64,000 nucleotides of DNA. It comes from Camelus dromedarius. Its lineage: Eukaryota. Every line of letters starts with the position of its first letter. Positions within the stretch are counted from its first letter, which is position 1. The stretch covers positions 35,216,001-35,280,000 of the forward strand of contig NC_087454.1 in NCBI RefSeq assembly GCF_036321535.1, written 5' to 3'. This document shows positions 3,638 to 51,513 of the stretch, piece after piece. Both the position numbers and the translations under genes were made by a program. The notes below the pieces were generated by a model, which did no database searches, was not told the DNA's origin, and saw nothing but the letters and a program-made list of their open reading frames with translations.

Positions 3638-3751
3638 TTTTTTTTTTCTTTTCTTTTTGAAGTACAGTCAGTTTCAATGTGTCAGTTTCTGGTGTACAGC
3701 ACAGTGTCCCAGTCATGCATATACATACATATATTAATTTTCACATTATTT
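3638..3751 (-). mobile_element. Severely 5'-truncated young L1 3' tip with target-site duplication
   Basis: T-tract then gaagtacagtcagtttcaatgtgtcagtttctggtgtacagc..., flanked by TGAACAGGTGAATGTTC (3621-3637) and TGAACAGGTGTATATTC (3752-3768), a 17-bp duplication with 2 mismatches. Confidence 0.8.
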
Positions 3752-4207: not shown

Positions 4208-6268
4208 AAGAAAAGTCAGAAAACAACGAACAAAATGGAAATAGTAACTCCATACTTACCAATAATTACTTAAATATAAATGAACTACATTCTCTAATTA
4301 AAAGATATAAAGTGGATGTGTGGATGAAAAAACAAGACCCATCTACATGCTGCTTACAAGTGAGTCACCTCCTTTAAGGACACAAAGTAAAAGGATGGAA
4401 AAAGATATTCCATGCCAATGGAAATAAAAAAAAAGCAGAGGTAGCCGTACTTATGTCAAACAAGATAGACTTTAAGCCAAAGACTATTATAGGAGACAAA
4501 GAAGGTCATTATATAATGATAAAGGGGTAAATCCAACAGGAGGATATAATATTTATAAATATCTATGCACCCAACCTAGGAGTGCCTAAATATATAAAGC
4601 AAGTATAACAAATCTGAAGAGATAAAGACAGCCATCCAATAATAGTAGAGGATTTTCATACATTTAACAACAGGCAGATCATCCAGACAGATAATCAATA
4701 AGGAAACACTGGACTTAAACTGCATGTTAGACCAGACAGACTTAACGTAGAACACGCCATCCAAGAGCAGCAGAACACGCATTCTTCTCAAGTGGCATGA
4801 AATATTCTCCAGTTTGTATCATATGTTAGGCCTCAACACAAATCTTAATAAATTTAAGAAGACTGAAATCATAGCAGCATCTTTTCTGATCACAAAAGGG
4901 TGAAACTGGAAATCAATTACAAAGAGAAAACTGGAAAATTCACAAGTATGTGGAGATTAAAAGCATACTACTGAACATAAAATGGATCAAAGAAGGGATT
5001 GAAAGAAAATTAAAATATTATTTGAGACAACTGAAAATGGAAATACAACACACCAGAACATATGGGATACAGCAGAGGCAGTAGGGTGTTCATAGTAATA
5101 AATGCCTACAGTAAGAAATAAAAAACTCAAATACACAACCTAACTTTACACCTCAAGAAACTGGAAAAAGAGGAATAAACAAAGCCCATAGTAGAAGGAA
5201 GGAAATAACAAATATGAGAGTGGAAATCAAAGAAATAGAGATGAAAAACACAATAGAAAAGATCAATAAAAGTAAAAGCTGGCTTTTTGAAAAGATACAC
5301 AAGTTAAACAAACCTTTAGCTAGACTTTCCAAGAAAAAGATTCAAAAAACACAATTATCAGTGAAAGAAGAGACATTACAACTGATACCACAGGGGAGAA
5401 AAAAGGATCATAAGAGACCGTTACAAATTACTATACATCAACAAGTTGGACAATATAGAAGAAATGGGTAAACTTCTAGAAACACACAATCTACTAAGAC
5501 TGAATCATGAAGAAACAGAAAATCTGGACAGANNNNNNNNNNNNNNNNNNNNNNNNNNNNNNNNNNNNNNNNNNNNNNNNNNNNNNNNNNNNNNNNNNNN
5601 NNNNNNNNNNNNNNNNNNNNNNNNNNNNNNNNNNNNNNNNNNNNNNNNNNNNNNNNNNNNNNNNNAAAAGCTGAAGATAAGGGAGTATTTTCTGAACTCA
5701 CTTTATGAGGCCAGCATTATCCTAATACCAAAATCAGACAAGGACACTACAAGAAAAGAGAATTATAGGCTACAATCCTCTTGGACATAGATGCAAAAGT
5801 CCTTAAGAAAATATTAGCAAACCAAACTCAATATATTACAAGGATTATGCACTATGATTAGTTGGAATTTACTCCAGGGATGCAAGGATGGTTCAACACC
5901 CACAAATCAACGCGATACATTGGTTGTCAGGAGCAGAGGGGAGGACTGGGGAGGAATGGAGTGAGGTTAGTTAAAGGGCATAAACGTTCAGTTATAAGAT
6001 GAATGAGGCCTGAGGATCTAATGTAAAACATGGTGTCTATAGTTGATAATGCTGTATGGTGCAATTAGAATTTGGCAATGAGATTAGAACATAAATGTTT
6101 TTACCAAAAAGAAAAGAAAAAGACAAGTATGTGAGGTAATGGATGTATTAAGTAACTAGATGAAGGAACCCTTTCACACTGTATATCAAATCACCATGAT
6201 ATACACTTTACATACCTTATAATTTTGTATGTCTAATATACTGCAATAAACCTAAAGTTTAAAAAAAG
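4208..6268 (+). mobile_element. Decayed L1 (L1MA9-like): ORF2 endonuclease to N-terminal RT, internal deletion, then 3' UTR
   Basis: Frameshifted ORF2 peptides (..IEKINKSKSWLFEKI.., ..NSLYEASIILIPK..DTTRKENYR.., ..PGMQGWFN..). It jumps to an L1MA9-type 3' UTR at ~5920 and ends AATAAA plus an A-run at 6246-6268. Confidence 0.9.
5533..5665. other. Assembly gap (133 N) inside L1 ORF2
   Basis: N run; the length is close to the ~46 ORF2 codons missing between ENLDR and the EYFLNSLYEAS block. Confidence 0.95.
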
Positions 6269-10277: not shown

Positions 10278-10451
10278 NNNNNNNNNNNNNNNNNNNNNNN
10301 NNNNNNNNNNNNNNNNNNNNNNNNNNNNNNNNNNNNNNNNNNNNNNNNNNNNNNNNNNNNNNNNNNNNNNNNNNNNNNNNNNNNNNNNNNNNNNNNNNNN
10401 NNNNNNNNNNNNNNNNNNNNNNNNNNNNNNNNNNNNNNNNNNNNNNNNNNN
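10278..10451. other. Assembly gap (174 N)
   Basis: N run abutting an L1 3' UTR. Confidence 0.95.
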
Positions 10452-10817
10452 AAGTAAGTCAAACAGAGAAAGACAAATATCATATGGTATCACTTATATG
10501 TGGATCTAAAATATGATACAAATGAACTTACTTACAAAACAGAAATAGACTCACAAAGAAAACAAACTTATGCTTATCAAAGGGGAAAGTTGGGGGGAGT
10601 GATAAATTAGGAGTTTGGGATTAGCAGATACAAACTACTATATACAGAATAGATAAACAAGGTCCTACTGTATAGCACAGGGAACTATATTCAATAACTT
10701 GTGATAACCCATAATGAAAAGGAATATGAAAAGAATATATATATAACCGAATCACTATGCTGTACACCAGAAACTAACACAACATTGTAAATCAACTATA
10801 TTTTAATTAAAAAAAAA
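10452..10817 (+). mobile_element. Cetartiodactyl-type L1 3' UTR (5' part lost in gap)
   Basis: aagtaagtcaaacagagaaagacaaatatc...gaatcactatgctgtacaccagaaactaacacaacattgtaaatcaac plus an A-tail; homologous to the copies at 17734 and 45184. Confidence 0.9.
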
Positions 10818-11611
10818 CAACCTATAAGGTAGTTGCACGGATCTACAGAGCAAGTGAGACAGTACCTGTCGTCCAAGAGGTCACGGTCTTTTGGGGATTA
10901 AGGTGGGACAAAAATAATCGAACACAGGGACGTACACATAGGGAATTCTTAATAAGGTTTGAATTTTTAAAAAGACCAGCCATATCTTTAAAATACACTT
11001 GGTGTTTATTAAAATAATCTAGTGTGATCATCTCTGGAAGTCAATAGAAGATCAAGATGAGGGAGCCAGGCCTTTTAAATTTTTATTAATTTTTTTTTTA
11101 AAGCAGTTGGAAAACTTACAAGGTTAGTGACTTGCTTGCCATTCCAGACTCAGGTTCTCAGACAGGAACCACAGTTTTCCAATAAAGGTGCTATAAAATG
11201 GGTTTCTGGAATGCAGGAATGAAGGAAGAGTGGCTCAGGTTCAAAGTCCAGGTAACCTTCCGTGAGAAGGTAGGACTCAAGCCAGGACAAACAAAAGACA
11301 GGGTGGAGTGGGCAGAGCAGTGGAATTTAGGGACTGACAGGTGCGAGTAGTACTTGGTGGTACTTGGAACCATCCTCCCTGACTGGGAAGTAAAAAGCTC
11401 TCCTAGCAGAGTTGAAATGATGAAGTGCCCCCCTCCCCATTCACCCCAGGAAAACGGTCCTGTGCATAGTTGCAACTGACACCCCATATGCCTTAGAAAA
11501 ACTAGTTTCAGGCCAAAATCGGCCTTGTTACACTCAGCTTTCAGTCTTCTGCAGAAATGCGCATTCCGTGGCTCCAGATTTTAACTTTGGCAGGTTGGGG
11601 GCGGTAGTGGG

Positions 11612-11613
<2 letters not shown>

Positions 11614-11687
<74 letters not shown>
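11614..11687. repeat. (GT)37 microsatellite
   Basis: Uninterrupted GT dinucleotide run of 74 nt, ~0.6 kb upstream of the CpG island. Confidence 0.97.
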
Positions 11688-11689
<2 letters not shown>

Positions 11690-12790
11690 AGATCCTGGGA
11701 GGTGTCTTGGCAGAGGTCACAGCCACTGGAAGGGGAAGGTGTGAGGCCTAGAGGGCAGCCAGGTTGGGAGTAGAGTCGGAGTAGACTCTGGAAAACAATC
11801 CATCAATGTGATTGGTTTTGACCTGGTCGGCAAGCCTTTGTGAAGGAGCCAGCTTGGTTAGACAGGGAGAAGAGGGGGCAGTGCAGGGTCCTGGCTCAAG
11901 TCCGTGGATATGACTCGGGGGCGAAGGAATGGTCGTTACCCCAGTAGTGAGCCTCTTGGGTCCTGCCCAGCTACCCCTTCTTGGACAGCAACCTACCCTT
12001 TGCAAGAGACTGGGTGCTGGTGCAGAAACGCAGGCGCCGGATGGGGGATGCTCACCTGGCAGCTGCCCTGCCTCCCCCGCTCCTCCCGCCTCACCTGTCC
12101 AGGCTCGTCAGCAGGGGCCAACATCTGGCAAGGCTGGAACAGGCCCAGAAACCCAGCTTTGCCAGCTCGTGTTTGCATGTGGGCTTCTGATGGGGAGCAT
12201 GCACACGTCTGGGACCCTCGCAGACCCCTGTGCTGTCGGTGGTCTGGGGAGAGGGATTTCCTGTTACTACCGTGTACGGAGCCGGCGGTGGCTGAGGGTG
12301 TTACACCGCCTGCAGGCGGTGCCCGCGGACCGGAGGGCAGGGCAGGGCGGGGGGCCCCGCGCCGTGCGGGCGGGGGCCGCCTGGGCGGCGCGCACACAGG
12401 TGGCCGAGGCAGCCGCAGCCAGGGCGTTGGGGCCCCCGCAGGGCCGCACGGAATCCCGCGGCCCGGGGCGCCCACGGCGCGCGAGGTGCGCTCCGGGGCG
12501 GTCCCGCCTGACCCCGGAAGGGAAAGCGGTTTTGGGGAAGGGGAGCGAGGAGAGCGAGTTAAGTCAAACTGAGCGTCAAAGTTGTTTTGCTGCCCTCGGG
12601 CCGCCTCGTCCCCGCCTCCTCTTTGCCCCAGGCTCCTGCTGAGTGGCCTCCTCGGAGCCCCGGCACTCCCCGCGTCCCGGCCGGAGTCGGGGGGCCACGA
12701 GCGCCAGGTCTCGGGCTTCTCGACCCTCCGGAGCCAGGTCGCCGCGAAAACCCGGAGCGGAGCGGCCCTCGGGCCGGAGCCGCCCCGGGC

Positions 12791-13573
<783 letters not shown>

Positions 13574-16500
13574 TGACCAGGCAGGTGAGGAGCCAGGTGG
13601 CTCGGGCCGTTCCCCGCCCGGAGGACGGAGCGCGGCACCCCGCTCCCGGGGCGGCCCCCTCGCCCTGCATTCCCGGACCGCTGGCCGGGGAGTGTTTCCC
13701 CCTCGGCCTGGGCAGAGCGGGGAGGAGGTGGGCAGCGCGCGAGCGAGCCGCGCTATCTCGGCATCTTCCGAGGAATGTGCTCCGGGCCTTATCGCGGGTG
13801 GGCCGTGCCGGGAAGGGCTGTAGCTGGGCGGCCTGCCTGGGCTCCGGTACCGGCCGCGGAGGGGGTGGGGGAGGAGGGGGGCTGTGCCCGCGGAGCCGTG
13901 GGCAGGTGCCCAGGTGCCCGCCGCTCGGGCCCGGCCTGCGTGGACCTGTTGCGTGGAAGCAGCCGCGGTGAGTGTCCGCAGAGGCTCTGCCCCGCGGGCC
14001 AGCCTTGCAGCCGCCGCTCCCAAAAAGGCCGCCTTCAGCTTGCCGCCTTCTGCCCTTGCGGTGATGTGTTACCTTTTCAGAATTGTTTATGTAAATTAAT
14101 CACTCTGCTGCGGGCCAGACTTGTCAAGCGACACATGCTGATCGTGCTTTAATGGAGGGTCCGGAACTGCGAACTTTCCACCTTCGAGCTTGCCCAGGGA
14201 ACTTAGCTTGAGGAAGCCTTAAGGAGGAAGGTATCCCCAGTCCAGGGCCGTCTGTGCAGGAAGTCGGTGTGCAGTAGTCCGAAGGTGTTCAGGAAGTAGG
14301 GGCCCTGAAGGCCGGAGCGTCGGAACTCGTATCTTGCTGGACCCTTTTTGTTAACACAAAGCCCAGACGCGGTCGCAGAAACACTCACTAGTCAGACGTT
14401 CGGGCTTGTTAGAATGCCCCAATGCGTTCTCCGGCCGGAGAGTGTTTTCAACAGCAGAACTGTGTTTTTCTCAACCTTTCAAGTGTTGTTATTCTCCTTG
14501 GATTAACTTTCCTTGGTCTCTGTGGAATTGATTGGATGGTTTGCTCCGTGCGATCCCGGGGATTATCCTCGCTGGGATCTTTGCAAAGTCCACCCCCCAC
14601 CCCCAGGCTTTATTTAGCTTAGAAGCAGAAAAGCCATCCAGTTCCCTCCAGCGTTTATTATTTTGCAGGCATTTTCAAACATGGTTTTATCCGGCCTTTA
14701 GCTTCCTTAAATTTGACTTAAAGTCACGAGCTCACTTACTGCCATAAGTTGTGATGAGTTTTAGGCACGGCTATGGCCAGGAATATAAAATATGTAATTT
14801 AATACGTTTCAAGGGCTTCAGAATGAAGTTGTGAAAAGAGGGGAGTGAAAAGTTGTTCTGCTAGAAACGTTTCCGTACTCTCTGTGGTGTTGTTTTGCTT
14901 GTTTGTTTCCTTCTGCAGGACTGGAAGATGCCCTTTGACTTGGATTGGTTTTTCACTCCCTTCTGCAGAGTTTGTGGGTTTTCCTGTAACGTTGGGGAAT
15001 TCAGCTCGGTATGAGAAATTAGGGGTTTGGATGTGTCAGGTATTTCTCCTGAGTCTAAATGGAAAACTTCTCAGAAGCTCAAAATACAGTCTGTAAATGT
15101 GGGCATAAACAAGCTTTTCAGAGGCTAGACGTGGTCTCGGTGATGGGTCATTGCTCTGACAGCTCTTAAATTAGTTTTATAGTTTTCAAGTTGTGTAAAA
15201 TCCATTTGTCCCTGACTCATTGCGTGCCTGGGTGCGTGCAAGGCAGACTCCGGACAACCACCTTGAAAACACAGATGTTTGATTCACCATCTTTGCTTGG
15301 GCGTCTGTTGTTTCTCCTCTGAGATGTGTGTAACTCATTAGTGCTGCTCACTGCTGTCCCTGCCCCCTGCCCCCTCCCATAGCCCCACCCCTACCCCCTT
15401 GCCTGCCACTGATGGACCTCCAAGGTGTTTGTGGGGGTGGCCATACCTGCTGTATGTTCTTCATTTGCAGCCGAAAGGGAAGCCTGCACCCTCCACCCCA
15501 ACAGCAAGGGTACACCCCTCCAGCCTTCAGCATCGTGAAAAGCACCTCCTTCTCCCTGGAGGTCTGCAACCTCTGTTAGCTCCAGTCCTCTCGTTTCACA
15601 AACGGAGACTCAGAATTGAAGTGACTTTTTCAGGGCTAATTCCCGCCAGTTAGATGCAGAATCGCTGTCATCCTCCTTTTCAGGTGTCTGGCAACTATGA
15701 CAACTTTGGACGCCCAGCAGGAACCTGGCCCGCTGCGCTTCTAGCACCGTCAGACCCTCAGTTACTTAGCCCCCCAGTCTGACTCACATCAATAAGCTTG
15801 GCCGCAGTCAAGCATTTAATGACCCTCCAGTATTTGCTAGTTGTGGGAATGTAGAGATTAAGGAAGGTGTGATTCCTATGAGCTGTTTGCAGCTTTGCGG
15901 GGAGTCGGGGACTTCAGTACAGATGTGGTGGGTGTGGGGTGGAGTGGGCGCCCCAGTTACCAGACTTGGTGGTTGCTTCCCTGATCTTCTAACTTTTTTG
16001 CTGAACCTGCACCACCATCTCCAGCAGGATCCACCGTGTGATAGCCTCCAGGCTGCCATTCTGCAGGGTTGCTTAGAGCCTTCACCTTTAGCCTGGAGCA
16101 GCTGGACGAGAGCCTCACCACCCCTTCCCATCCTCCCTCCTCTCCCCTCCTCCATCCCTTTGGGATGTTGTTAACAGAGGCACCTTGAGATGCCCCCTTG
16201 GGAGCATATGCCCAGCATCCAGTAGGTCCTGCTGGATAAACTGCTGTTAATCTGTGGAATGAAAGTTGCTGAGTCTGATCCAAATCTTCCTCCTCTGCTT
16301 CTTTCTTGGCCCTGAAGCACATCACTGCTGCGGCATCGGTCCTTTTAATGGAGTCGGGGGTCTTCAGGTTGGAGGCATCCTCAGAAGTGGAGGTCGTCTA
16401 AGTGGTGCAGTGGTTTTGTCTTCCTCTCCATCATCAGTCCATCCCTGCCTTCCTTTTTGCACATACTCTGTGTTTCTGATGCCATCAGTTTCCCCACAGT

Positions 16501-17733
16501 GAGCTCCGATTCTCTGATACCTTCCAACACGTGCATTTACATGGCCTCTCTAGACCGTCACAGCGCCTGGTCTAATAGGCAGCAGATATTTGGAGTGAAC
16601 GCTGTCAAGCCTTTCTCGTTTAACAGGTTGAGTTTCGTCTTGTCACCTCCCTTAGTGAGAGTTCATTTGATCGTCCCATGACTGTCCACTGACCTTATCT
16701 CAGATACCTGCTCCTGCCCATCATTCTTTCTCACGTCCTGCTTTGTTTTCCCCCGCCCTCAGAGTACGTATCACTGTATCACTACCGAGCTCCAGTCTGC
16801 ACTTGGTTACTTGCCCAGCTCCCCAGCCAGCACATAAGCTCCTTGAGGGCAGGGGTGCTTTTGTTCGAGGCTGAACCCAGGACCGTGTCTGGTACACAGT
16901 GGGCACTCCAGTGCCTGTGGCACGGACAAGTCCTTATACCCTGTCACGGGTGGACGGCCCCGTTTCTTAGTCATCGTGACTGCCCTTCCCACCTCTGGCT
17001 GTGGCTGCGCACCAGTCTGTGGGAATTGGTAACGACACAGAGACACTGAGAACTCAGAGGTCCTGTGCTGCCCATCTGTTCTCTGTCTCTTCTATGCTGG
17101 ACACTTTTGACCGCCTTACCTTTTGGAGATAATCTTTATGCGTCGTCGACATATTCTGTGGATATGACTTGCACATCTCCAGCTGTGATCTGTTGAGAGG
17201 ACACTCATGCCCAGATGGAATAAGCCCCTCTTGTTTTCAACCCACCATGTTTCAGTTTAGGTCTCGCCCCCCCCCCCCCCCGCCCCAACTGGCTTCTCTC
17301 CCCAACAGTTCCATTTCTAAAGGCTGGGGCAGCCGCTCTCCCTGCCTCACGGATTCAGGGACTTAGCTTCTCATCTCCGCCATCCTTCCATCAGAATGCC
17401 CTCTTTCCTCTCCATCTCTCGCTCCCCTGGCTGGTTCCCCCTGGATTCCTGCTGTCCTGTCCGAGGCTGGCCATCTTCTGCGGGTGCTCTTAGGGCTGGG
17501 CTGGAAGGAGCGGGAAGCAGGGATGCTGGAGTCAGTTCAGGTGCTGCTCCACCACCTGCATTCTTTCTCCAAGCCTCCCTTTCCTCACCTGTCACAGTAG
17601 CACCTACTTTGTATGGTTATTCCGGGATTAAAGAGATAATGCAGGCAGTGCACTTAACAGGGCTGAGATGGCTAAGCTCCTTTTGGATACTGTGACAAGA
17701 TGCTTTTTAGGATACAGTGTTGGTTATTATGTA

Positions 17734-18410
17734 TTTTTTTTTGAAGTATAGTTATTTACTATGTTGTGTTAGTTTCTAGTGAACAGCATAGTGATTCAGT
17801 TATAGGTATATACATATATATATATATTCCTTTTCAGATTCTTTCCCATAATAGGTTATTGTAAGATACTGAATATAGTTCCCTATGCTATACAGTAGAA
17901 ACTTGTTGTTTATCTGTTTTATACATAGTTGTTCGTATCTGCAAATCCCAAGCTCCCAATTTATCGCGCCTCCCTTTCCCCTTTGGTAACCATAAATTTG
18001 CTTTCTATGTCTGTGAGCCTCTTTCAGTTTTGTAAATAAGTTCATTTGTGCCATTTTTTAAGATTCCACAGGTAAGTGATGTCATATGATATTTGTCTTT
18101 CTCTGGCTTACCTTCAGTTGGTAAGATCATCTCTAGGTCCATCCATGTTGCTGCAAATGGCATCATTTCATTCTTTTTTATGGCTGAGTAGTACTTCCTG
18201 TTATATAAATACGCCACAGCTTCTTCATCCAGTCATCTGTTGATGGACATTTAGGTTGCTTCCATGTCTTGGCTATTGTAAATAGTGTTGCTCTGAACAT
18301 TGGGGTGCATGTATCTTTTCGAATTAGAATTTTCTCCAAATGTGTGCCTAAGAGTGGGATTGCTGAATTGTATGGTAACTCTATTTTTTAGTTTTCAAAG
18401 GACTCTCCAT
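17734..18410 (-). mobile_element. Cetartiodactyl-type L1 3' end (ORF2 C-terminus + 3' UTR), antisense in intron 1
   Basis: The minus-strand frame reads KKNEMMPFAATWMDLE (L1 ORF2 end), with a T-tract at 17734-17742. Confidence 0.92.
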
Positions 18411-19672
18411 CCTAAGGAAACTGTGTTTTATAAACTGGACTTTGAAGACATTTTCCTGGGAATTGGTAAATTAATTTTTAAAACCAAAGTTAAATTTTTA
18501 ACTTTCTTTTAAATAATAATTTTTAAAACATCCTAGGTTCTGTAACATCTAGATGACCTTACAATGAGTCATGCCATAAGGATTTTGTGCCGATGTTAGA
18601 TTGAGCACCCCTTTGATTGTCTCTAGCGAAGCAGGAAGGGTCAGATGTGGACTTATCGCAGAAATCATGCTTTAGGGTCAATTGAAGGCTGGAAGTTCAT
18701 GAACTAAGGTTTCATGGCAGTTTGCCAAGAGTGATGGATGCTGAAGATCTCCCTGCCCCACGGTGGGGCAGCCTCCCTGAGTTGTGAGGAACCTGCCCCA
18801 GGTAGCGTCTTGCACACGATGCAAAACAGCGTCATAATCGTCTGTCGTGTGCAATTAACACCGAGTTCTCTTTTGTTGTTTTTTAATCAGATTTTTAAAT
18901 TGTTTCACCTTATTGTTTTCATAAGAGCTCAAGCACAGGGTGGGCATACCTAGCTTTTTATTCAGACATGCTTAAATAACATTATAATGAAAATGAATTT
19001 AAGGCAAAGCCCAGGAGGAAGGGCGTCCAAGAGATCACTGTCCCCTGGGAGCGGTGACTCGCATGTTCCTCAGGTTTGGGAAGCCGCTCTCCTTTCTCGG
19101 ATGTGCTGTTGGTTTTCTGATTATGTTTCTTGTGAGTCCAGCCCCCCTTCCTCTTCTCCTGCTCCCACCTCGCAGACCCCCCCCCCCACTTCCCAGGTGA
19201 GGAGACTGAAGCCTGGGGGAGGTGTAATTTCCCCCAGGTAGGTGGACATTAAGGTCTCTTTGATTAGAAGCATTGAGTAGTTGCTGCACATTAATAATAA
19301 TCCTAATAGCCACCGCTTACTGAGATTTTACTGAGCTCCAAACATTGTATTAAATGCTCAGTATAAATTATTTCCCTTAAATGGAATAGCAACTCACGTT
19401 AGCCCTTAGAATTCCAGTTTAGCCAGTGCAGACGCTGAGGCTTATTTAAGAAGTTGCTCCAGAAGCTTGTGTAAGGAACTGGGCTGAGGTCTGCTGTGGG
19501 GCCAGCGCCTGCCTCCAGCCCCATGTGTCACTTGCCCCCGGGGGTGGGGCTTGGCTGTGTGACCTGCTTCGAGGAGCCTCCACTGAAGGTGATGACACCT
19601 CCAAGGTGTCTCTCGCTCTCTGAGGAGCCAAGGGAAGGCTTCAGAGGGGGTGACATTCGCATTGGAAAGAAG

Positions 19673-19905
19673 GAATTGGTTTTCTCTGGATTTATGCCCA
19701 GGAGTGGGATTGCTGGATCATATGGTGACCCTAGCTTCTTAAGGAAGCTCTCTTCTGTTCTCTTTGGTGGCTACACCAAACTACATTCCTACCAACAGTG
19801 TAGGGAGCAGTCCCTTTTATATGTGAATAACTGAATCACTCTGCTGTACACCAGAAACGAACACAACATTGTAAATCAACTGGACTTCAATTAAAAAAAA
19901 AAAAC
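19673..19905. mobile_element. 5'-inverted L1 insertion (antisense internal piece + sense 3' tip)
   Basis: 19673-19815 is antisense L1 sequence (homologous to 18322-18410 and beyond); 19817-19905 is the sense L1 3' tip with an A-tail. Confidence 0.7.
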
Positions 19906-21820
19906 AAAGGGAAGGGAAAGACATGTCGTGGTTGCCCAAACCAGTCCTTTCCAGGTGGCTCGGGCTAGGATGCCTGAGGGGTTGAGCAGGACTGGACAGA
20001 GGCTGGGGTTGGGGCCCTTTGGCAAGGAGATGAACTCTGTCCTCTGGATGGCATGTCAGCAGAGGCACAGTACAGGTTGGACCTCTGTTCTAGAAAGGTG
20101 GCTCTGGGGCGGGGTGGGGGAAGCAGTCTGGAGCCCCTGTGGTGGTCTGCGTGGGAGGAACCATACAGCACCTGTGGGCTGGGCGAGGCAGGTGCTTCGT
20201 GGAGGATGTTCAGGCTGGGAGCTTCCTGCCCTCTGGTCCAGTGCTCTTTCTCTGCCCGCTTCCGTGTTGTGCGGACCGCCTGAGGTCTGCATCAGTGCTC
20301 TGGGGGCACGAAGCATTTACCTCCCTTTTGTGGACACATGTTCCTCGATTGTTGAATGTTATGTGTCTGCATTCAACTCGTAAATTGCTTGCTAAGCTTT
20401 GTACGTAGTCATTGGCTTGGGGGAAAGATGGACAGCCAGATGTGCTCAGGATGGGGAAGTTTGTTTGTTTTGGGTTTCAGATGAATATGGTCAGCGAGTT
20501 GATAAAACTGCAGCCGCAATAACGCTGGTAGCCCAGTGTGTTCTGTTTTCCTGAGGAATGTGTCTGGGTACCACGTGTGTACCAGACCACGGACCTCAGT
20601 TTCCTCATTCTCTGCTGATGCTCTGAAACACTGGTGCCTGGAGCATTTTTCATTTCCAGAGTAACTTGGGAGTCAACTCGAGGCTGACATCTCATTTTTA
20701 AAAAATCGTTCAATTCTTTGAGGAGATAGCAATACTACTCACTTAATAAACCTTTCCTAGAGTTTGACCAAGTTGAGCTGTGCTGGTAAAATAGCAAAGT
20801 GAGCCTGTTTCCACAGTCTCCTCCTCTCTTTTCTGGGGCTTTCAGGGACAAGGGGGCACCTCGGCCCCTCTTCATAGCTTCCAGAGTGTCATCCTCTCTG
20901 CCAGAAAGTGAACTTACGTACTGCGATAAGTCGGCACTTGGGATTGTCTTAAAAAGGATCCTTTACACAGACTAGAAATCTGAGGGGTAAAGCATAGCTG
21001 ATATTTACCCAGGAGGGTCAGGAACAGCAGTGTGAACGTTTCTCAGCAGTGATGACAAAAAAATCCCAGCCTTGGTCCTGCCGGGCCCTGGACAGAGGTG
21101 TTGGGCTCTTTTGGGGGGAGGACCCCACAAGGCTGCAGGCTTCTCTCTTGGCTCACAGAAGTCTAAAGAAAGTTTGCCTATTTTAGGACTCTGTCCGGAA
21201 CACAGGGCTAGAGATATTTGTCCCCTTCATGTGATAGTTTGAGGGGTGATGAGATCACGGGCCAGAGCTTAGTAAGTGCATAGGAGAAACTCCTGGATGT
21301 CCATTTACTTTCTCCTGGGTATTACTTAGTGGGCGGGAATGGTAATTTACTATCGCATGTGGTATTTTAGGAGGTCTAATCGGGTGTGTGTGCGTTTGTG
21401 CCTGCAGTGTAAAGTACTTTGAACTTCTGGAAGTAGGATGGAATATTTTAAAACATTATTTTTTTTGCTTATCATCATTTTGAGAAATTTCCTTATATCT
21501 AGGCTGTAGCTTCTAGATTCCGGAGAATTTGACTCAGTTGGGAGAAATTTGTTAATTTCTGTTTCCGAGAACTGCAAGGAGTAGATTTGACATGTGGTGG
21601 GTAAAAGGTGCTACACCTAATTGCAGCGTGTTACAGACTGAGTCCTGGAGGGTATGATCAGATGGTGGAGGACTCTCCACCCTGACCGCTCCAGTCGCCT
21701 TTCTCTCCACAAGCCACAGCCCCTTCTGGGGGAAAGATAATCAGAGGGGCTGTCAGCTGACTCGTGGGGGAAGTGGGGAGCATTTGTGAAGGGCAGAAAG
21801 GAGCTGCTGAACCCTGAGGA

Positions 21821-22242
21821 TGTGACCTGGGTTCTGACTTCCTGACCTGATGGAGAGGATGCTGTGACCTGGGCTCTAACCTCCTGACCTGATGGAGAGG
21901 ATGCTGTGACCTGGGCTCTGACCTCCTGACCTGATGGAGAGGATGCTGTGACCTGGGCTTCCTGACCTGACGGGGAGGATGCTGTGACCTGGGCTCTGAC
22001 CTCCTGACCTGATGGAGTGGGCGCTGTGACCTGGGCTCTGACCTCCTGACCTGATGGAGAGGATGCTGTGACCTAGGCTTCCTGACCTGACAGGGAGGAT
22101 GCTGTGACCTGGGCTCTGACCTCCTGACCTGATGGAGAGGGTGCTTTGACCTGGGCTCTGACCTCCTGACCTGATGGAGAGGATTCTGTAACCTGGGCTC
22201 TGACCTCCTGACCTGATGGAGAGGGCGCTGTGACCTGGGCTC
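21821..22242. repeat. Minisatellite of 42-bp and 36-bp units (10 units + partial)
   Basis: Consensus TGTGACCTGGGCTCTGACCTCCTGACCTGATGGAGAGGATGC. Units start at 21821, 21863, 21905, 21947 (36 bp), 21983, 22025, 22067 (36 bp), 22103, 22145, 22187 and 22229 (partial). Confidence 0.97.
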
Positions 22243-23559
22243 GTGCTGTTAGTGCAGCTGGCCTCACTTTGGACCATGATGTGGCCTTGTTTCGTCTCAT
22301 TACAGGAGTAGTATGTGTCGGATGCATCGAAAAATTCAAAGAATAAAAAATGTGACACTTTCCTTGATTCTCTCCAAGTGATTCCAGCCAGACATGAATG
22401 ATTTTAGAAGGTATTCTTACAGACTTTTCCTCTTCACATGCCACCATATAGTTATTACTCTTAAAATGACAAGAGGACCCCTATGTAAATGACTATGTAA
22501 ATTGCTTTGCCACTTTTTTTTTTTAACTTCACACTGTGCCCTGGACATCTCCACGTCAGTACGTATAGATGTATTTGAGCACTGATGCTGGTGCTATAGA
22601 GTTCCCTCGTGTGGGATATGCCAGAGTTGATTTATTTCACCATCCTCCGATTGCTGAATATTTAAATTGTTTCCACCTTATTTTTTTGCAGTGACAAATC
22701 GTGCTGGACTATATGTTCCTGTACATGTCCCTTTGCAGATGTTTCTTTAAGATGAAGTTCAAGATGCATAATTGTCAGATGAAAGGGTGCACACTTTAAA
22801 AATTTCAGTAGATATTGCTAGATTGTCAAAGATTATTATTTTTTTAATCAGAGTTGAATGGAGGCCTTGCCATTAGGGAAATCTACCCACTTCCCAGCTA
22901 GAGGATGAAGGATGAGGGAGGTAAGGTGATGTGTCACAGGAGTATGAAAACGTGGGCTGTCCTCTCCCCGTCCTGACTGCACCTGCTGTGAGCTCTCCCG
23001 GGGGCTGGGAACATAGGCCAGGAGGTGGTTCTATCATTTCTGCTCCTTTTCTCCTTGACAGGACTCCTTCCCGTAAACCTGTGAAAACCCTCGGGTAGGC
23101 TTCCGTCAGGCACTTAGACTTTTGTTCCAGGTCTTTGGAAGACAGACATCTGACTCCTGTGTTGAAGTAGCCTGTGGGCTGCAATGGGGCAGGGAAGCGA
23201 GCGGGATGGAATTCCTCACGTAGCTCAGTGCCAGGCAAACTGGGAGTTGCCATGGACCTCAAGGGAGGCTGGTTTTCACCGAAGGGAGGTTCAGATGGGC
23301 CGGGCAGTGGGGGCGGGCGTCGCAGATGGGGAGCTTTTGTGAGTCAACGTGATGCTGTGTTGCGGAGCAGAGACCCTCACTCTGGGTTGTGTTTCTGGAG
23401 CAGGGGGTGCAGATGGACAGTGTGCAGGATGTGGGGGGACAGGCAGCATGGCACCAACGCGGTGTGATGACTGCGCGGACCAGCCCTGCCCCCGGCCCGC
23501 CTCCTGATGTGGCGGTTCAGGCCCACGTCTCCCGCTGGCCGGGAGAGTCTGTAGACTGC

Positions 23560-23730
23560 TTAGGAGGCGGGCCTCTTGGTTGCGACGCCTCGGACAGGTA
23601 ACTCGGCACCCCTGTGCCCCAGTCTGCTTGTCTGTAAAAAGAGGGTAGTAATAGTTCCTCTGTCTCAAAGCTGTTTGAAGGGTAAATGAGTTCATGCATG
23701 TAAAATGCTGGGAGCACGTCTGTTCCATAG
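23560..23730 (+). mobile_element. MIR SINE
   Basis: ..cccagtctgcttgtctgtaaaaagagggtagtaatag..tgagttcatgcatgtaaaatgct.. Confidence 0.55.
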
Positions 23731-24459
23731 ACAGGCCCCCAGGACAAAGGGATGGTCCTTGTCATCATTATTGGCTATTTTGTGAAAGAGGCCGAAACCC
23801 CTTCACCTCCAAATCCGGTCTCCAGACTTGGTGGGAGAGATCCGTCTGAAACACAGGTGTGGTGGGTGACTTCCTGCGGCAGTGGCTTCTCCCCTTTTGG
23901 GACAGCCTGGCCGTGTTTTCGTCCCCCGTCCCTCCCCATCCGGAACCTGTGCTCCAGCAGCGGCCGGCTCCCCTGGTTACCAACCGCGCCATCCTCCCGC
24001 ACCTTCCTTTGTGTTCTGTCTCCTATGAGGTACTCTCTCTCTCTGCCTCCTTGTCTGCCTCGCTGTCTGCATCCCATGGGACACAGCTCCAGCGATACCA
24101 TTCCCGTGGGAAGCCTCCTCTTACCTCCTCTCTGGTTTCTGGGGACACCAGTACCATTATTCTCACCTCTTTGTCTGGGTCTCTGTCCCCCGTCGAAGCT
24201 GGTTCCTTAGAGCTACGCACCTTTCCTTCGGTTGCGTTCCCGCGGCCTGACAGGGTGATGAGCACAGAGCAGACACGTGAGACGTCTTGCAGCATCATGC
24301 AGGGGATGTTTTCAGCCCATCTGGGGAGGGCATTTAGAAATGGGTTTGGGCCAGACCGGGAAGTAGAGCTTGAAGATTGCTCCAAGGAGGGCCGTGCTTT
24401 CTGCGGTCCTTGCCTGTCTGGGTGGCGTCACAGTGCGGGGAAAACAGTCCAGGCCTTGG

Positions 24460-24570
24460 AGTCCGTCAGCCCTGGGCTCCTGTCCTTGCTCTGGCCGACA
24501 CTGGCATTGACCTTGGGCAGTTCATGTAATCTCTTGAGCCTCAGTTTCCTTATCTGAGCCATGAAGCGGG
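24460..24570 (+). mobile_element. MIR SINE core
   Basis: tgaccttgggcagttcatgtaatctcttgagcctcagtttccttatctg. Confidence 0.7.
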
Positions 24571-25399
24571 TGGTGTCGGTGATGTTCAAGGTCTCTCTGA
24601 GTTCTGACCTCCCTGGGTGCTAATCTGATGAAAGTTTATGACTTGAGGCCGCTGCGCGAACCTTAGGGAAGCGGTGCCCTGTTGTGCACGTGCTCCGGGA
24701 GGCCGCCCAGTGGGGCTGAGCAGAACCACAAGGCTAGGCTTAATCGTCATAATCAAGGGTTCGGTAATAAGAAGAAACTGTTCCAAATGCTTACCCTCCT
24801 GTGGTCAGTTGTTGATTCCCAGAACCAATTAGGGCAAAAAGATCAGCAGATTTTCTTTGGTTAAAACACACACACACGCACACACCCACCAGCGACGTTC
24901 GAACACGGAATTCTTTCCCCCTGTGTCAGTCGCGTTTCCCCAGCTTTTAGAAGCGAGGCGAAGCGGGCCGCTTGGCTGGGGCTTTGTCTCCTTAGTAAAT
25001 GAACTCAGGCAGTTAGGAGGTGGCTGTTTGAAACTGCACTTTGGCTTGATTTGAGTACCCGAGAGACTGTATTTTGGGAAACTTAATTGGCGGACCGATG
25101 CTTAGAACATCCGTGGGCTAACCTCACCCTGAGGTAGCTTTGCAGGGAGTCTGTTGGGTTGAAAGCTGCCCACTCCTACTCTTCTGCCTAATCGCTCGCT
25201 TCCTGACCGGGTGTCGGTGTCGGGGGCTTCCCGGGCCACGTGGTTCAGGAGTAGGGGGAGGGGATGGACCTCTGCTGGGTCCTGCCAGACCCTCCTCCTT
25301 CCCCTGCTCACTCCACGCACTCCTGGGTGCTGGCTGTGCTCTGGGCGTGGTTCCTTCTAGCAAGGTGGAGATCTTGCCTTGTCCTAATGGAGCTTCCAT

Positions 25400-25960
25400 T
25401 CTGGGTAAGGGAGACAGCCAGGAAGTGGATGAGCAGATGAGAATTTCAGAGAGTAATGAGAGCTGTCAACCACAGACAGGGAAGTGCGGCAGAGAGCAGT
25501 GGAGCAGAGGCTCCTGTTTGCTCTGAGAAGGCATCTCTGAGGAGGTGACCTTTGCACTGATGCTGTGAGGAGGTGCGTGCGTGTGGTGGAGGTCCTTGCA
25601 AAGCTTTGGGGATGGGTTTGGTGAGCTTGTGGGCTGGACAAGGTCAGTGTGGCTGGCATGACAGGGACAGGGAGCAGGAAATAAAGGTGAAGGTGTAGGT
25701 GGGGCTCAGAGACCCTGGGGAGGAGTTTTTCCATCCATGGGAAGTGTGGCAGATCATAAGCCCATTAGTATCTCACTGATGCTTTAGAAAGTTCACTCTG
25801 CTGGCTGGTTAGAGTTTTGTCTAGAGGGAGGGAGGGTTCTCAGAAGCAGGGAGACCTGGAGAGAGGAGCTGATGGTGAGTAATGAGATTTATGGTGGGGG
25901 TAGAGTCAACAGGACCTGCTGATGTATCGGATGTAGATTTTTGGTTTCATCAGCTGAGGG
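25400..25960 (-). mobile_element. L2 LINE fragment
   Basis: Purine-rich antisense L2 pattern (..ggcatctctgaggaggtgacctttg..ggtcagtgtggctgg..caacaggacctgctgat..). Confidence 0.6.
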
Positions 25961-26119
25961 CTGGCAGATTCCTCGCCAGGTTTCGGAGGACTAGGAAAGG
26001 GAATACTGCAGCCGTGTAGGGGCTGGTCAGTACTTGAGTTTGGGCATGAGACCCGGACCTTGGGCCAGGAAGCCTGGGTAACCATAACTGCAATAAAGAC
26101 AGCAGATGTTTTTTGAGTA

Positions 26120-40769: not shown

Positions 40770-41200
40770 AACAGTAATAATTATAGCTAACGTTTGTTAA
40801 ACTTTTCTCACGTAGGCACTGCTCTAAATGCTTGACCTGTGTCCACTCATGTAAGTGTCACCACAATTCTGTGAGGGACAGGGACTGTTATCACCCCCTC
40901 TGACAGATGAAGAAACTGGGGCACAGAGAGGTTAAGCTGCTTTCGTGAGGTCACACAGACAGCCGGTAACTGGGGGAGCTGCGTCTGCAGACTTCAGACT
41001 CCACAGTGCTTCTTGGCCCTGCTGTTTATGGTAGACAGGGAGGGACTTTGGACGTGAGTTTGAATCCTGGCGCCGACACACCTGTGTAAACTGGGCCCAG
41101 GTGTGTCACCTGTCCATGCTGCAGTTTCATTATTTGTGAAATGACAGTAGCGGCCAGGAGTAGAGTGGTTTTTAAGATTCAGGGAGGTGAGGTTCGCAGA
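40770..41200. mobile_element. Two adjacent MIR SINEs in opposite orientation
   Basis: 40770-41010 is antisense (..cagatgaagaaactggggcacagagaggttaag..); 41040-41200 is sense (..tttgaatcctggcgcc..gcagtttcattatttgtgaaatg..). Confidence 0.65.
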
Positions 41201-42985: not shown

Positions 42986-44504
42986 TTTTTTGTTTTTTTA
43001 AACATTTATTAGTTTATTGTTTCTACAAAATGCATTAGTCATCATTTAAATATCTGACATCATTAGAAATCATTTTAACATTTTTTTCTCCCTCCTGCCA
43101 TAAAAATACACTAAGTAATTTGCTTAAAAAAGAAAGCTATGAACAAGTGTTGTGGTTTCCTCTCCCTCACCTAATACGCACCTCAGTGACAGCAGTTTGT
43201 GTATTAATAACACAGTGGGCTGAAGGCTGAGCTTCAGATGCTCTTCCACTTCCAAGTGCAGTGTGTATGTACATAAACACACATCTGTACACCGAGCAGT
43301 TATGTACATGGTGCTATACTTGTTAATGCACTCCCTCCTGTTTCGGGAAAGTCCTTCGACAATTCCTTGAAACAAACCCTCCAAAATAAATATGCCCTGA
43401 TGACTCCCGATGCAGGGCTGACCCCAGGCAGTGGCATGTTGGACATGGATTCTGGGCTGTAATGTGTCGATGAAACGAGTGAGTCTGGCGCCCCCCCGCC
43501 CCCCCCCCCCCCCCCGCCAACCCTTCAGCATCTCTTGACGGTGGTTTAAAACAGTGTGGTCCTCGGAAGCGTTACTGAGAACGAGAGACGACTTCTTCTT
43601 CCCCCTAATTACACTTTCCCCCTAGTGTAATTAGGTTGCACTGACAATGCCAGTCAGTGTCGCCTTGGGAGACTATGGGTCGTTTCTTTGTTTTGTTTTG
43701 ATTTAATTTATCTCAAATCACGTTGATGGGCGTTCTGAAATTCCTCCCCTAAAATCAAATGTTTTGTGAGTTTTTTAAACGTGTCTCATCCTTTGGGTCT
43801 CTCACCTGCCTCTCTATTAGGGGCCCGGGGTCTTGACCCCAGCCCCGCACATCCTCTGTCCACATCTGACCACACGCAGGGCCTCTCGTGCCAACCAGAG
43901 AGTGAAGCAGGTGCTCCCTTTCTCACTGGAGGGCCGGGTTTGGAAGCGGGTCCCTGGGCAGGTGGTGTCCGACAGCCCAGGGTGGGCCGGCTCGTATTCT
44001 TTCAGTTCCACCAGGACTGCCCTGCTGCTGGGTAATGGCTCCTCCTTTGCCTCCAAAAGTAGACCAAGCCTTTTTCTTTTTTTAATATGCCTTTTAAAAA
44101 AACTTATGGATTAGTTTATTAAGAAGCAAAAATGGTGATGTAAGTAGGTCTAAGAGCCTATCCTTCTACAGAAATATAAAAAGAATCCAGAAAAGCTGTC
44201 CAAATCACGTTTGTTAGAACTCTGAAAAACTATCCAAAGCTTATAGCAACCAAGGCAACTCTTACTGCCTTCTGTAGATTCTTATTTTGTAGCTGGCTTT
44301 ATTCCTTTGATAACTATGTAAGTTTAAAAAGCTAAAGATCTAATCTCTTCTTAGAAACAGTAATTAGTACATATATGTAAACTAAAAAGAAGTGCAGAGT
44401 ACTGTATATATGTATGTAAATGCAATATAATGAGCATGTGCCGTCAAACTAATAATTCTACATAATAAAACTGAAAAAGAGAAAAAAATAAAATAAAAGT
44501 TGTT

Positions 44505-44618
44505 TTAAAATTGAAGTAGAGTTGATTTACAATGTTGTGTTAGTTTCTGGTGTACAGCATAGTGATTCAGTTATTCATATACATATTCTCTTTCAGATTC
44601 TTTTCCATTATAGGTTAT
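44505..44618 (-). mobile_element. Cetartiodactyl-type L1 3' tip
   Basis: gaagtagagttgatttacaatgttgtgttagtttctggtgtacagcatagtgattcag..cagattcttttccattataggttat. Confidence 0.85.
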
Positions 44619-45183: not shown

Positions 45184-45770
45184 ACAAAAACTTCAATTCG
45201 AAAGGATACGTGCACCTCAATGTTCACAGCAGCACTATTTACAATAGCCAAGACATGGAAACAACCTAAATGTCCATTGACAATGACTGGGTAAAGAAGT
45301 TGTGGTATATTTTTTACAATGGAGTACTACTCAGCCATAAAAAAGAATAAAATAATGCTATTTGCAGCAACATGAATGGACCTGGAGATTGTCATACTAA
45401 ATGAAGTAAGTCAAATAGAGAAAGATAAATATATGAGATCACTTATATGCGGAATCTTAAAAAATGAGACAAATGTACTTATTTACAAGATAGAAACAGA
45501 CTCACAGACACAGAAAGCAAATTTATGGTTACCAGGGGAGAAAAAGGGGGAGGGTTAATTTGGGATTTGGGATTAACAGATACACACCACCATGTATAAA
45601 ATAGATAAACAACAAGGACCTACTGTATATATACCACAGGGAAGTATACTCAATATCTTGTAATAACCTATAATGGAAAAGAATCTGAAAAAGATTGTAT
45701 GACTGAATCACTTTGCTGTGCACTTGAAACTAATATAACATTACAAATCAACTACACTTCAATAAAAATC
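45184..45770 (+). mobile_element. Cetartiodactyl-type L1 3' end, sense in intron 1, inserted into a MIR
   Basis: ORF2 end (..MFTAALFTIAKTWKQPKCP..) plus 3' UTR, flanked by the 9-bp duplication AAAGTGTCT (45175-45183 and 45771-45779); MIR core cctcaatttcctcatctgtgaa just upstream. Confidence 0.9.
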
Positions 45771-46055: not shown

Positions 46056-46203
46056 TAATTTTATGCATTTTTACCATCATGCTTATTATATTGAGTGCTA
46101 ATAGGATTTTCATGTTTCTTATGGTACATTGAAGGTATTTTGAAATGCAGTCCTAATATTTTTAGAACTGAAAAGAGCCCTCTGACCATTTAATGCTTAC
46201 TTC

Positions 46204-46278
46204 TTTTTTTTTTTTTTTTAATTGAAGTACCATCAATTACAGTGTGTCAATTTCTGGTGTAGAGCATAATGTTCCAGT
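46204..46278 (-). mobile_element. Young L1 3' tip with target-site duplication
   Basis: T-tract + gaagtaccatcaattacagtgtgtcaatttctggtgtagagc.., the same subfamily as 3638-3751, flanked by ATGCTTACTTC / ATGCTTATTTC. Confidence 0.75.
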
Positions 46279-46984
46279 CATGCTTATTTCTTACACAAGG
46301 AAACGGAGGACCAGAGAAGTCAAGTGACTCACCCGGGAGCATACCCATTCCCCTCTTCTTTACCAAAACACACTAAAAAAGTGTCTTATTAACACTTATT
46401 TCATCAGTAGTCCTTATTTTTGAGTCTTTGCTAAAACCATTTCAAATTCAAATTTGGGTGTGAGATATGCTTGTTTGAATTCTCTGCTTTAGCCAATGGA
46501 TCTTTTTAATATTCTGTGAAAATTTCTTGGGTTTTCCCCTTTATTATAACTTTCTCATGTATCAAAAATCTTGTCAACCAATGTTTATTCATAATATTAA
46601 TGTATTTTTCTGTTTAACTTTCCTTTAGAAAAATCATTGCTCTGTGATTAACCATAGAATTTGCTGGGATAATCTGTGTAGTTTTTACATGGCACACCTG
46701 AGGATTCTATGCCATCTTGTGGTAGAGCGTTTACTCTACCAGATTTCCCCAAGAGTCCTCACAGACTCTTTGCCCCTTTCAAACGCTGCTCAGAGAGCTT
46801 TGTGTAAGAAGCCATACTATCATAAGGGAGAGGAAAGAGGCCTGTGGAGAACAGAGGGGCTCCAGCTGGTGCTGGCACTGCTGCCAGACTGGAAGAGTTA
46901 GACCAGGGGGGATCTCCACCCCTTCTGACCCTCTAGCTGAGTGTAACTGCATGAGTGAGGTCAGGTGAAAAGAGCAGAGGAACT

Positions 46985-51381: not shown

Positions 51382-51513
51382 NNNNNNNNNNNNNNNNNNN
51401 NNNNNNNNNNNNNNNNNNNNNNNNNNNNNNNNNNNNNNNNNNNNNNNNNNNNNNNNNNNNNNNNNNNNNNNNNNNNNNNNNNNNNNNNNNNNNNNNNNNN
51501 NNNNNNNNNNNNN
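51382..51513. other. Assembly gap (132 N) covering most of LRRC1 exon 2
   Basis: N run ending 11 nt before a GTAAGA donor. Confidence 0.95.

Follow-up and report, generated by a model that had tools for sequence, protein, structure and literature searches.

RAR/RXR receptors recognise direct repeats of the RGKTCA half-site with spacers of 1, 2 or 5 nt (PMC1785376). A multiplication of such a site is found in the Alu element: its sequence AGGTCAggAGTTCA is a consensus DR2, of which more than 90,000 copies exist (Laperriere et al. 2007, PMC1785376). The Alu DR2 arose from a near-miss hexamer by CpG deamination and recruits RARs in vivo at some of the tested loci; most consensus DR2 copies are considered not to be receptor-bound in a given cell type (PMC1785376). 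The human genome has 108,582 consensus DR2 elements altogether, with 4,186 located outside transposable elements, and the mouse genome has 26,717 (PMC1785376, Table 1). Regions bound by RAR/RXR often hold several half-sites, and a functional DR8 RARE was described as an overlapping DR2 and DR0, the spacer containing a further half-site to make three (PMC4446430).

Factor motifs are also known from tandem repeats. In the TRIB3 promoter the copy number of a 33-bp VNTR tunes expression; the repeat unit overlaps a validated C/EBP-ATF element, and mammals show high conservation of its single-copy form (PMC7425993). ESRRA23 is a 23-bp hormone response element repeat (Laganiere et al. 2004, cited in PMC7084735). 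For human VNTRs in general, association of repeat length with the expression of a nearby gene was reported for 163 of the 10,264 genotyped loci (PMC8024321) and for 193 of 1,071 gene–VNTR pairs within 10 kb (PMC8096271).

The array studied here lies in a 64-kb stretch of dromedary DNA, which was analysed as a whole and is referred to as the window. The coding part of LRRC1 exon 1 was found by a six-frame search within a CpG island that also covers the promoter (Table 1), and the database relatives of this exon-1 open reading frame were the N-termini of LRRC1 and of Scribble-family proteins. A spliced LRRC1 fragment of 119 AA (P0032) matched the window over residues 1–53 only. Exon 2 was not found in the 64-kb window, where the later P0032 residues gave a best E value of 0.35; as nothing credible was found for these residues, intron 1 reaches the window end. 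The position of exon 1 and its GT donor therefore places the array in intron 1. The array begins 8,574 bp downstream of the donor, at a distance of 8,733 bp from the ATG. A perfect (GT)37 microsatellite (11614-11687) lies at the upstream edge of the CpG island, with approximately 1.4 kb between it and the start codon. Runs of N occupy positions 5533-5665 (133), 10278-10451 (174) and 51382-51513 (132) of the window, none of them near the array.

Tandem Repeats Finder (TRF) described the array with a period of 42 bp (10.3 copies, 85% matches, score 634) and also with a higher-order period of 120 bp (3.3 copies, 91% matches). A repeat search gave start-to-start unit spacings of 42, 42, 36, 42, 42, 36, 42, 42 and 42 bp. 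The array is 60% GC and contains 3 CpG. The two full 120-bp blocks differ at 4 of 120 positions. Both 36-bp units, u4 and u7, have a common 6-bp deletion that removes the middle hexamer, together with common T-to-C and A-to-G variants, and because the deletion and the GAC variant are the same in both, we conclude that these units were copied within the 120-bp block. The variant GGGCG is common to u5 and u10, and u8 carries its first (A-to-G) change alone, reading GGGTG. These shared variants indicate growth by 42-bp units first and by the 120-bp block afterwards, an order which fits the better TRF score at period 120. The four events separating the blocks, taken at ordinary mammalian substitution rates, suggest an age of the block duplication of about ten million years, as an order of magnitude. 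Damaged hexamers number three and all lie in edge units: TGACTT in u1, and TAACCT in u2 and u10. A homogenised interior with decaying edges is the usual pattern of minisatellites.

Table 1. Positions of the LRRC1 features, array units and response elements in the window, and the three hexamer slots of the camel consensus and of the orthologous units.
Feature	Position	Strand	Remarks
LRRC1 exon 1, coding part	13088-13246	+	53 AA; six-frame search; GT donor at 13247
CpG island over LRRC1 promoter and exon 1	12001-14250		GC 0.65-0.79; CpG observed/expected 0.7-1.06
Minisatellite array	21821-22242	-	AGGTCA strand; 10 full units and a 15-bp partial unit
u1	21821-21861	-	Edge unit; most diverged of the units; middle slot TGACTT
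u2	21862-21903	-	
u3	21904-21945	-	Identical to consensus
u4	21946-21981	-	36-bp variant; DR8 at 21949-21968
u5	21982-22023	-	
u6	22024-22065	-	Identical to consensus
u7	22066-22101	-	36-bp variant, twin of u4; DR8 at 22069-22088
u8	22102-22143	-	
u9	22144-22185	-	
u10	22186-22227	-	
u11	22228-22242	-	Partial, 15 bp
Two 120-bp blocks, u3-u5 and u6-u8	21904-22143		Each a consensus unit, a 36-bp unit and a GGGYG-variant unit
Perfect composite DR6+DR2, first of five	21907-21932	-	Three AGGTCA
Perfect composite DR6+DR2, second	21985-22010	-	Three AGGTCA
Perfect composite DR6+DR2, third	22027-22052	-	Three AGGTCA
Perfect composite DR6+DR2, fourth	22105-22130	-	Three AGGTCA
Perfect composite DR6+DR2, fifth	22147-22172	-	Three AGGTCA
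Sixth DR2	22201-22214	-	Standing alone
Camel consensus unit			10.3 copies; TGACCT / TGACCT / TGACCT
Gray whale u1			3-unit array; TGACCT / TGACTG / TGACCT
Gray whale u2			TGACTT / TGACCG / TGACCT
Gray whale u3			TGACTT / TGACTG / TGACCT
Muntiacus reevesi unit			1 copy; TGACCT / TGACTG (one extra T before) / TGACCT
M. muntjak unit			1 copy; TGACCT / TGACTG / CGACCT
Tamarin unit			1 copy; TGATAT / TGACTG / TGACTT

An exact count gave 26 perfect TGACCT hexamers and no AGGTCA on the + strand of the array, so every half-site has the same orientation. Successive hexamers are separated by 2 nt in six cases (DR2), by 6 nt in five (DR6) and by 8 nt in two (DR8); the remaining spacers measure 16 nt (nine, between units), 14 nt (two) and 28 nt (one). 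The composite TGACCT-N6-TGACCT-N2-TGACCT is complete in five units. Half-sites were scanned with the RGKTCA consensus, a DR2 being defined as two RGKTCA in direct repeat with a 2-nt spacer, and the array holds six perfect elements of this kind, all AGGTCA-GG-AGGTCA on the minus strand. Hexamer density amounts to 61.6 per kb in the array vs. 0.68 per kb (both strands) in the remaining window, an approximately 90-fold difference. When the unit was shuffled 200,000 times, no shuffle contained three half-sites and 249 contained any hexamer three times. The 27-mer core gave 8 matches in the window (expected, 0), all within the array. The enrichment of half-sites is that of one unit copied and not of 26 independent events. 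On the minus strand the 5′ flanks of the half-sites read CATC, CAGG/GGAG and GCCC; these are G/C-rich, which excludes monomer sites of the ROR, REV-ERB or NR4A type. The A/T-rich extension expected of a RevDR2 site is likewise missing. DR6 and DR16 are not known as standard elements for any dimer; COUP-TF and TR2/TR4 accept a wide range of spacings.

An earlier note, made from the letters of the sequence, had called this stretch a minisatellite located about 9 kb into the gene, in LRRC1 intron 1, and both the 42-bp head-to-tail organisation and the location are borne out by the TRF result and the distance to the ATG. Its reading of the minus-strand unit as AGGTCA-GG-AGGTCA-GAGCCC-AGGTCA and its hand counts of 26 AGGTCA hexamers and 6 DR2 elements in 422 bp proved exact. 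It had further assigned a DR8 to the 36-bp units, two of which were found with 8-nt spacers, and had rightly stated that the A/T-rich 5′ flank required by ROR/REV-ERB is absent.

Comparison with the described systems shows that the DR2 of camel agrees with that of Alu in its 5′ half-site and GG spacer and was likewise multiplied by copying in one lineage. In both, a point change turned a near-miss hexamer into the consensus DR2, which was then copied. The two differ in that the camel copying is a local tandem duplication at one locus and not genome-wide retrotransposition, and in the 3′ half-site, which is the more canonical AGGTCA in camel vs. AGTTCA in Alu. To our knowledge, camels have no Alus. 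Because the camel DR2 matches Alu DR2 elements that bind RARs, in vitro binding of its units by receptors of the RAR/RXR, COUP-TF or TR2/TR4 type is probable. The 36-bp units resemble the composite DR8 RARE in having two AGGTCA 8 nt apart, but their minus-strand spacer, GGAAGCCC, holds no third half-site; the camel DR8 is therefore not a composite DR2+DR0 RARE but a bare DR8 resulting from deletion of the middle hexamer.

Like the repeats of TRIB3 and ESRRA23, the camel array is a lineage-specific tandem unit with a factor motif, single-copy in other mammals. In contrast to TRIB3, the precursor motifs in camel are not conserved and the array lies 8.7 kb into an intron instead of in the promoter. 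A conserved, validated element within the unit, such as characterises repeats of the TRIB3/ESRRA23 type, was not found in the camel array. With an ordinary intronic minisatellite the array shares the head-to-tail 42-bp unit, the diverged edges, the higher-order block duplication and a single-copy progenitor at the orthologous site, with copy numbers of 1, 3 and 10 according to lineage. From such a minisatellite it differs in nothing essential; the camel unit happens to hold three nuclear-receptor half-sites.

To find orthologous loci, the exon-1 open reading frame read into the intron (162 AA) was matched to short gene models on long public contigs. This search returned no camelid-level matches. 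Loci with 10-kb flanks were obtained for gray whale (L001), Reeves' muntjac (L002), cotton-top tamarin (L008) and Indian muntjac (L009). By BLASTN, those of whale, Reeves' muntjac and tamarin are collinear with positions 12000-26000 of the camel window, and for the Indian muntjac the position follows from 95.7% identity between its locus and the segment of Reeves' muntjac. Four further contigs (L007 and L010-L012) are LRRC1, with a KLHL31-type Kelch/BTB gene upstream, and end at most about 4.3 kb past exon 1, before the array site. Another four, the Logan contigs L003-L006, were rejected as LRRC1: they show exon-1-level similarity only, carry PDZ-coding exons approximately 10 kb downstream and a PUF60-type RRM gene upstream, and represent the paralogue SCRIB. 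The first coding exon of SCRIB is approximately 80% identical in DNA to LRRC1 exon 1; matches to exon 1 only cannot separate the two genes.

At the collinear site the 42-mer is present once in tamarin and once in each of the two muntjacs, three times in gray whale and 10.3 times in camel. The whale array (L001:18006-18132, GCA_029890035.1) has a TRF period of 42 bp with 3.0 copies and 94% matches, and its first and middle hexamers are degenerate. Perfect half-sites number 0 of 3 in the tamarin unit, 1 of 3 and 2 of 3 in the muntjac units, and 1–2 of 3 in the whale units. In every non-camel unit the middle slot reads TGACTG or TGACCG (Table 1), so that among the five species only camel has the DR2, and the element is conserved neither in whale nor in either muntjac nor in tamarin. 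As judged from the sequences of these loci, the DR2 is a novelty of the camel lineage, absent in the four other species compared. The middle slot of camel u1, TGACTT, stands between the outgroup TGACTG and the camel TGACCT, one step from either. The other camel-wide changes, GATGTGGAAGATG to GATGGAGAGGATG, are likewise found in all camel units and are absent in the other species. Camel and whale units have no derived substitutions in common, and share the same register and the junction GAT-N-CTG-TGAC. The three-unit array of whale thus indicates either that two or more artiodactyl lineages expanded this site, or that a single early expansion was followed by collapse in the muntjacs. As the whale array, with its degenerate hexamers, expanded too, expansion is independent of the receptor motifs. 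These copy numbers agree with the earlier note, which had supposed a lineage-specific tandem amplification; the alignment to orthologous introns, which it had suggested for dating the array, confines the DR2 and the ten-copy array to camel among the five species.

The sequence around the array was compared across the same loci. Camel–whale identity on either side of the array is 71–88% per 100 bp vs. 0.80 overall, and overall identity is 0.68 between camel and tamarin and 0.69 between camel and muntjac. Conservation of the array flanks thus does not exceed that of the intron elsewhere. Within the array, counting every unit, mismatches occur at 3 of 176 positions in hexamer columns vs. 15 of 246 in spacer columns (Fisher p=0.029). 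This value was not taken as constraint, because spacer variants were inherited together through the 120-bp block; when distinct variants are counted once, there are 3 vs. 10 over 18 hexamer and 24 spacer columns (binomial p=0.17). The hexamer columns thus show no robust extra constraint, and we see no evidence of selection on them.

Approximately 290 bp upstream of the array, in the block 21525-21640, camel, whale, muntjac and tamarin agree in 66% of columns, and nearby in roughly 45–55%. A perfect AP-1-type heptamer, TGACTCA (21530-21536), is invariant in these four species and is contained in a modestly better-kept stretch from about 21200 to 21640. The block 21525-21640 could be a small old regulatory element. 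The TGACTCA motif taken alone means little, as there are 14 other TGA[CG]TCA in the window.

Taken together, the array is probably a neutral intronic minisatellite with a lineage-specific expansion. A 42-bp stretch of LRRC1 intron 1, old and originally single-copy, expanded in tandem in the camel lineage, from a precursor that already had three TGAC-core sub-motifs, the middle one being TGACTG or TGACCG. A point change of this middle slot to TGACCT in one unit created AGGTCA-GG-AGGTCA, the DR2, which was amplified. Growth took at least two steps, the first by 42-bp units and a later one by a 120-bp block that includes the 36-bp deletion variant. It presumably proceeded, as is usual for minisatellites, by replication slippage or unequal exchange. 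Directly after the last unit of the single-copy and whale sequences, GGCCTCTGAGGCTC loosely resembles the unit start, GTGACCTGGGCTC, and this loose likeness possibly seeded the array. It would be a non-contiguous repeat of the sort in the model attributed to Taylor and Breden (2000; reference 5 of PMC8096271), in which such repeats seed the birth of minisatellites from single-copy sequence by slippage. The 26 half-sites would in this way be a by-product of copying one unit, and selection would not be needed to account for them.

A different account of the same motifs is that the array serves as a camelid-specific enhancer or silencer of LRRC1 responsive to nuclear receptors, with RAR/RXR, COUP-TF (NR2F), TR2/TR4 or HNF4 dimers loading cooperatively on the DR2/DR6 units and copy number setting the response. 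Six perfect DR2 elements and 26 perfect half-sites in one orientation within 422 bp speak for it, as do the match of half-site and GG spacer to the Alu DR2 that binds RARs in vivo (PMC1785376), the multi-half-site make-up typical of RAR/RXR-bound regions (PMC4446430), and the existence of response-element VNTRs that tune expression, such as TRIB3 (PMC7425993) and ESRRA23 (cited in PMC7084735). So does the location in intron 1, 8.7 kb from the start codon. Enhancers are frequent in first introns close to promoters, and a conserved AP-1-type heptamer lies some 290 bp upstream. Yet the DR2 is absent in all four other species, the half-sites of the precursor are not conserved, and whale expanded a related array without a DR2. 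The lower number of mismatches in hexamer columns is a weak hint, its p=0.029 being uncorrected for shared descent, and it disappears at p=0.17 when shared variants are counted once; the flanks have no special conservation, and most consensus DR2 sites are unoccupied (PMC1785376). Among the literature matches listed, which were swamped by LRRC10-19, there was none linking LRRC1 to retinoids. On the comparative and base-rate evidence we therefore judge enhancer function unlikely, and the receptor sites, whatever they bind in vitro, are unlikely to matter for LRRC1. We are more doubtful of the full sequence of events in which a point mutation made the DR2, amplification gave a camelid-specific, copy-number-tunable enhancer for retinoid or orphan receptors, and LRRC1 came under new hormonal control; this we consider quite improbable. 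The array might also act on LRRC1 without nuclear receptors, through an effect of VNTR length on local chromatin or on the spacing beside a conserved neighbouring element, or at the RNA level. Between 1.6% and 18% of human near-gene VNTRs correlate with expression (PMC8024321, PMC8096271), the moderately conserved block 21525-21640 with its invariant TGACTCA lies just upstream, and the sense transcript has about 25 CUGAC motifs that resemble branch points and stand before pyrimidines (CTGAC on the + strand). These base rates are low, however, and we give this route a slim chance.

The earlier note had also named a sink as an alternative to the enhancer. In this reading the array would be a decoy drawing nuclear receptors off their other targets. 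The local density of half-sites is all that speaks for this, and the claim does not hold quantitatively: six DR2 elements are negligible vs. the thousands to about 100,000 in a mammalian genome (human, 108,582 altogether and 4,186 outside transposable elements; mouse, 26,717; PMC1785376), which makes a sink hardly credible. It is very unlikely, too, that the array or its copy number is an assembly artefact or that its minus-strand frames form a repeat-protein gene. Minisatellites are often mis-sized in assemblies; against an artefact stand the ordered private and shared variants and the higher-order structure, which are rare in collapsed or chimeric assemblies, and the orthologous three-unit array in the independent whale assembly. 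The coding possibility draws on unit lengths of 42 and 36 bp, both multiples of 3, and on a minus strand that is stop-free in all frames, with open frames of 160 and 124 AA. These frames are open because the unit has no stop codons on the minus strand; all three + strand frames are closed by TGA. No homologue of the 160-AA frame was found among 3,388 word-sharing candidates from a database of 5.8 billion proteins. Pfam gave no match for this frame and sub-threshold matches only for the 124-AA frame. With no protein relatives and no significant Pfam match, a coding reading of the minus-strand frames was ruled out.

The array as a neutral, lineage-expanded minisatellite offers a clean, dated and small example of how a motif that by chance nearly fits a consensus can be multiplied, through tandem duplication, into densely spaced consensus sites. 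The stages can be followed in living species, from one copy with 0–2 good half-sites, through three degenerate copies, to ten copies that each have three perfect half-sites. It also follows that motif density in a minisatellite cannot be taken to show function, as such motifs do not count as independent. The amplification in LRRC1 intron 1 that made a consensus DR2 is supported by sequence across five species; a literature search on minisatellites with AGGTCA gave no relevant match. If receptor binding and a copy-number-dependent response were true, the locus would be a tidy model of how a lineage-specific enhancer is born, and the enhancer reading would make it a datable de novo birth by minisatellite expansion. 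Even then, events of this kind would be known before from Alu DR2 and from the repeats of TRIB3 and ESRRA.

Other origins of the array were searched for in the region 19500-24500. Rfam (E<=1) gave no match on the array in this region, which ruled out a non-coding RNA reading. The only Rfam match there was SMAD5-AS1_1 'conserved region 1' at 21163-21433 (+), which is sub-threshold (19.1 bits vs. a gathering score of 45, E=0.34) and overlaps a stretch 81–88% identical between camel and tamarin. This match is probably due to chance or to a shared old repeat. The 27-mer core had 0 exact matches in JGI metagenome contigs. The sole contig with the conserved right-flank motif (L013) was discarded as a chance match, as it resembles no mammalian locus.

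A BLAST comparison of 19500-24500 with the whole window revealed no further copy of the array or its flanks, and a dispersed-repeat origin was rejected, as only a short SINE-like piece at 19820-19905 was obtained. Descent of the unit from a MIR core was likewise dismissed: the MIR-like copy in the window shares only an 8-mer with the array region in any of four species (E=4.5). An older and decayed element may still be the source. This MIR-like element lies at about 40800-41100 on the minus strand and has the core TGTGACCTCACGAAAGCAGCTTAACCTCTCTGTGCCCCAGTTTCTTCATCTG. The approximately 85-bp repeat at 19820-19905 is unrelated to the array and presumably belongs to a family of SINE fragments. 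Its copies, with 75–90% identity and on both strands, are located at 3639-3723, 10735-10821, 17734-17803, 44500-44581, 45696-45768 and 46203-46281.
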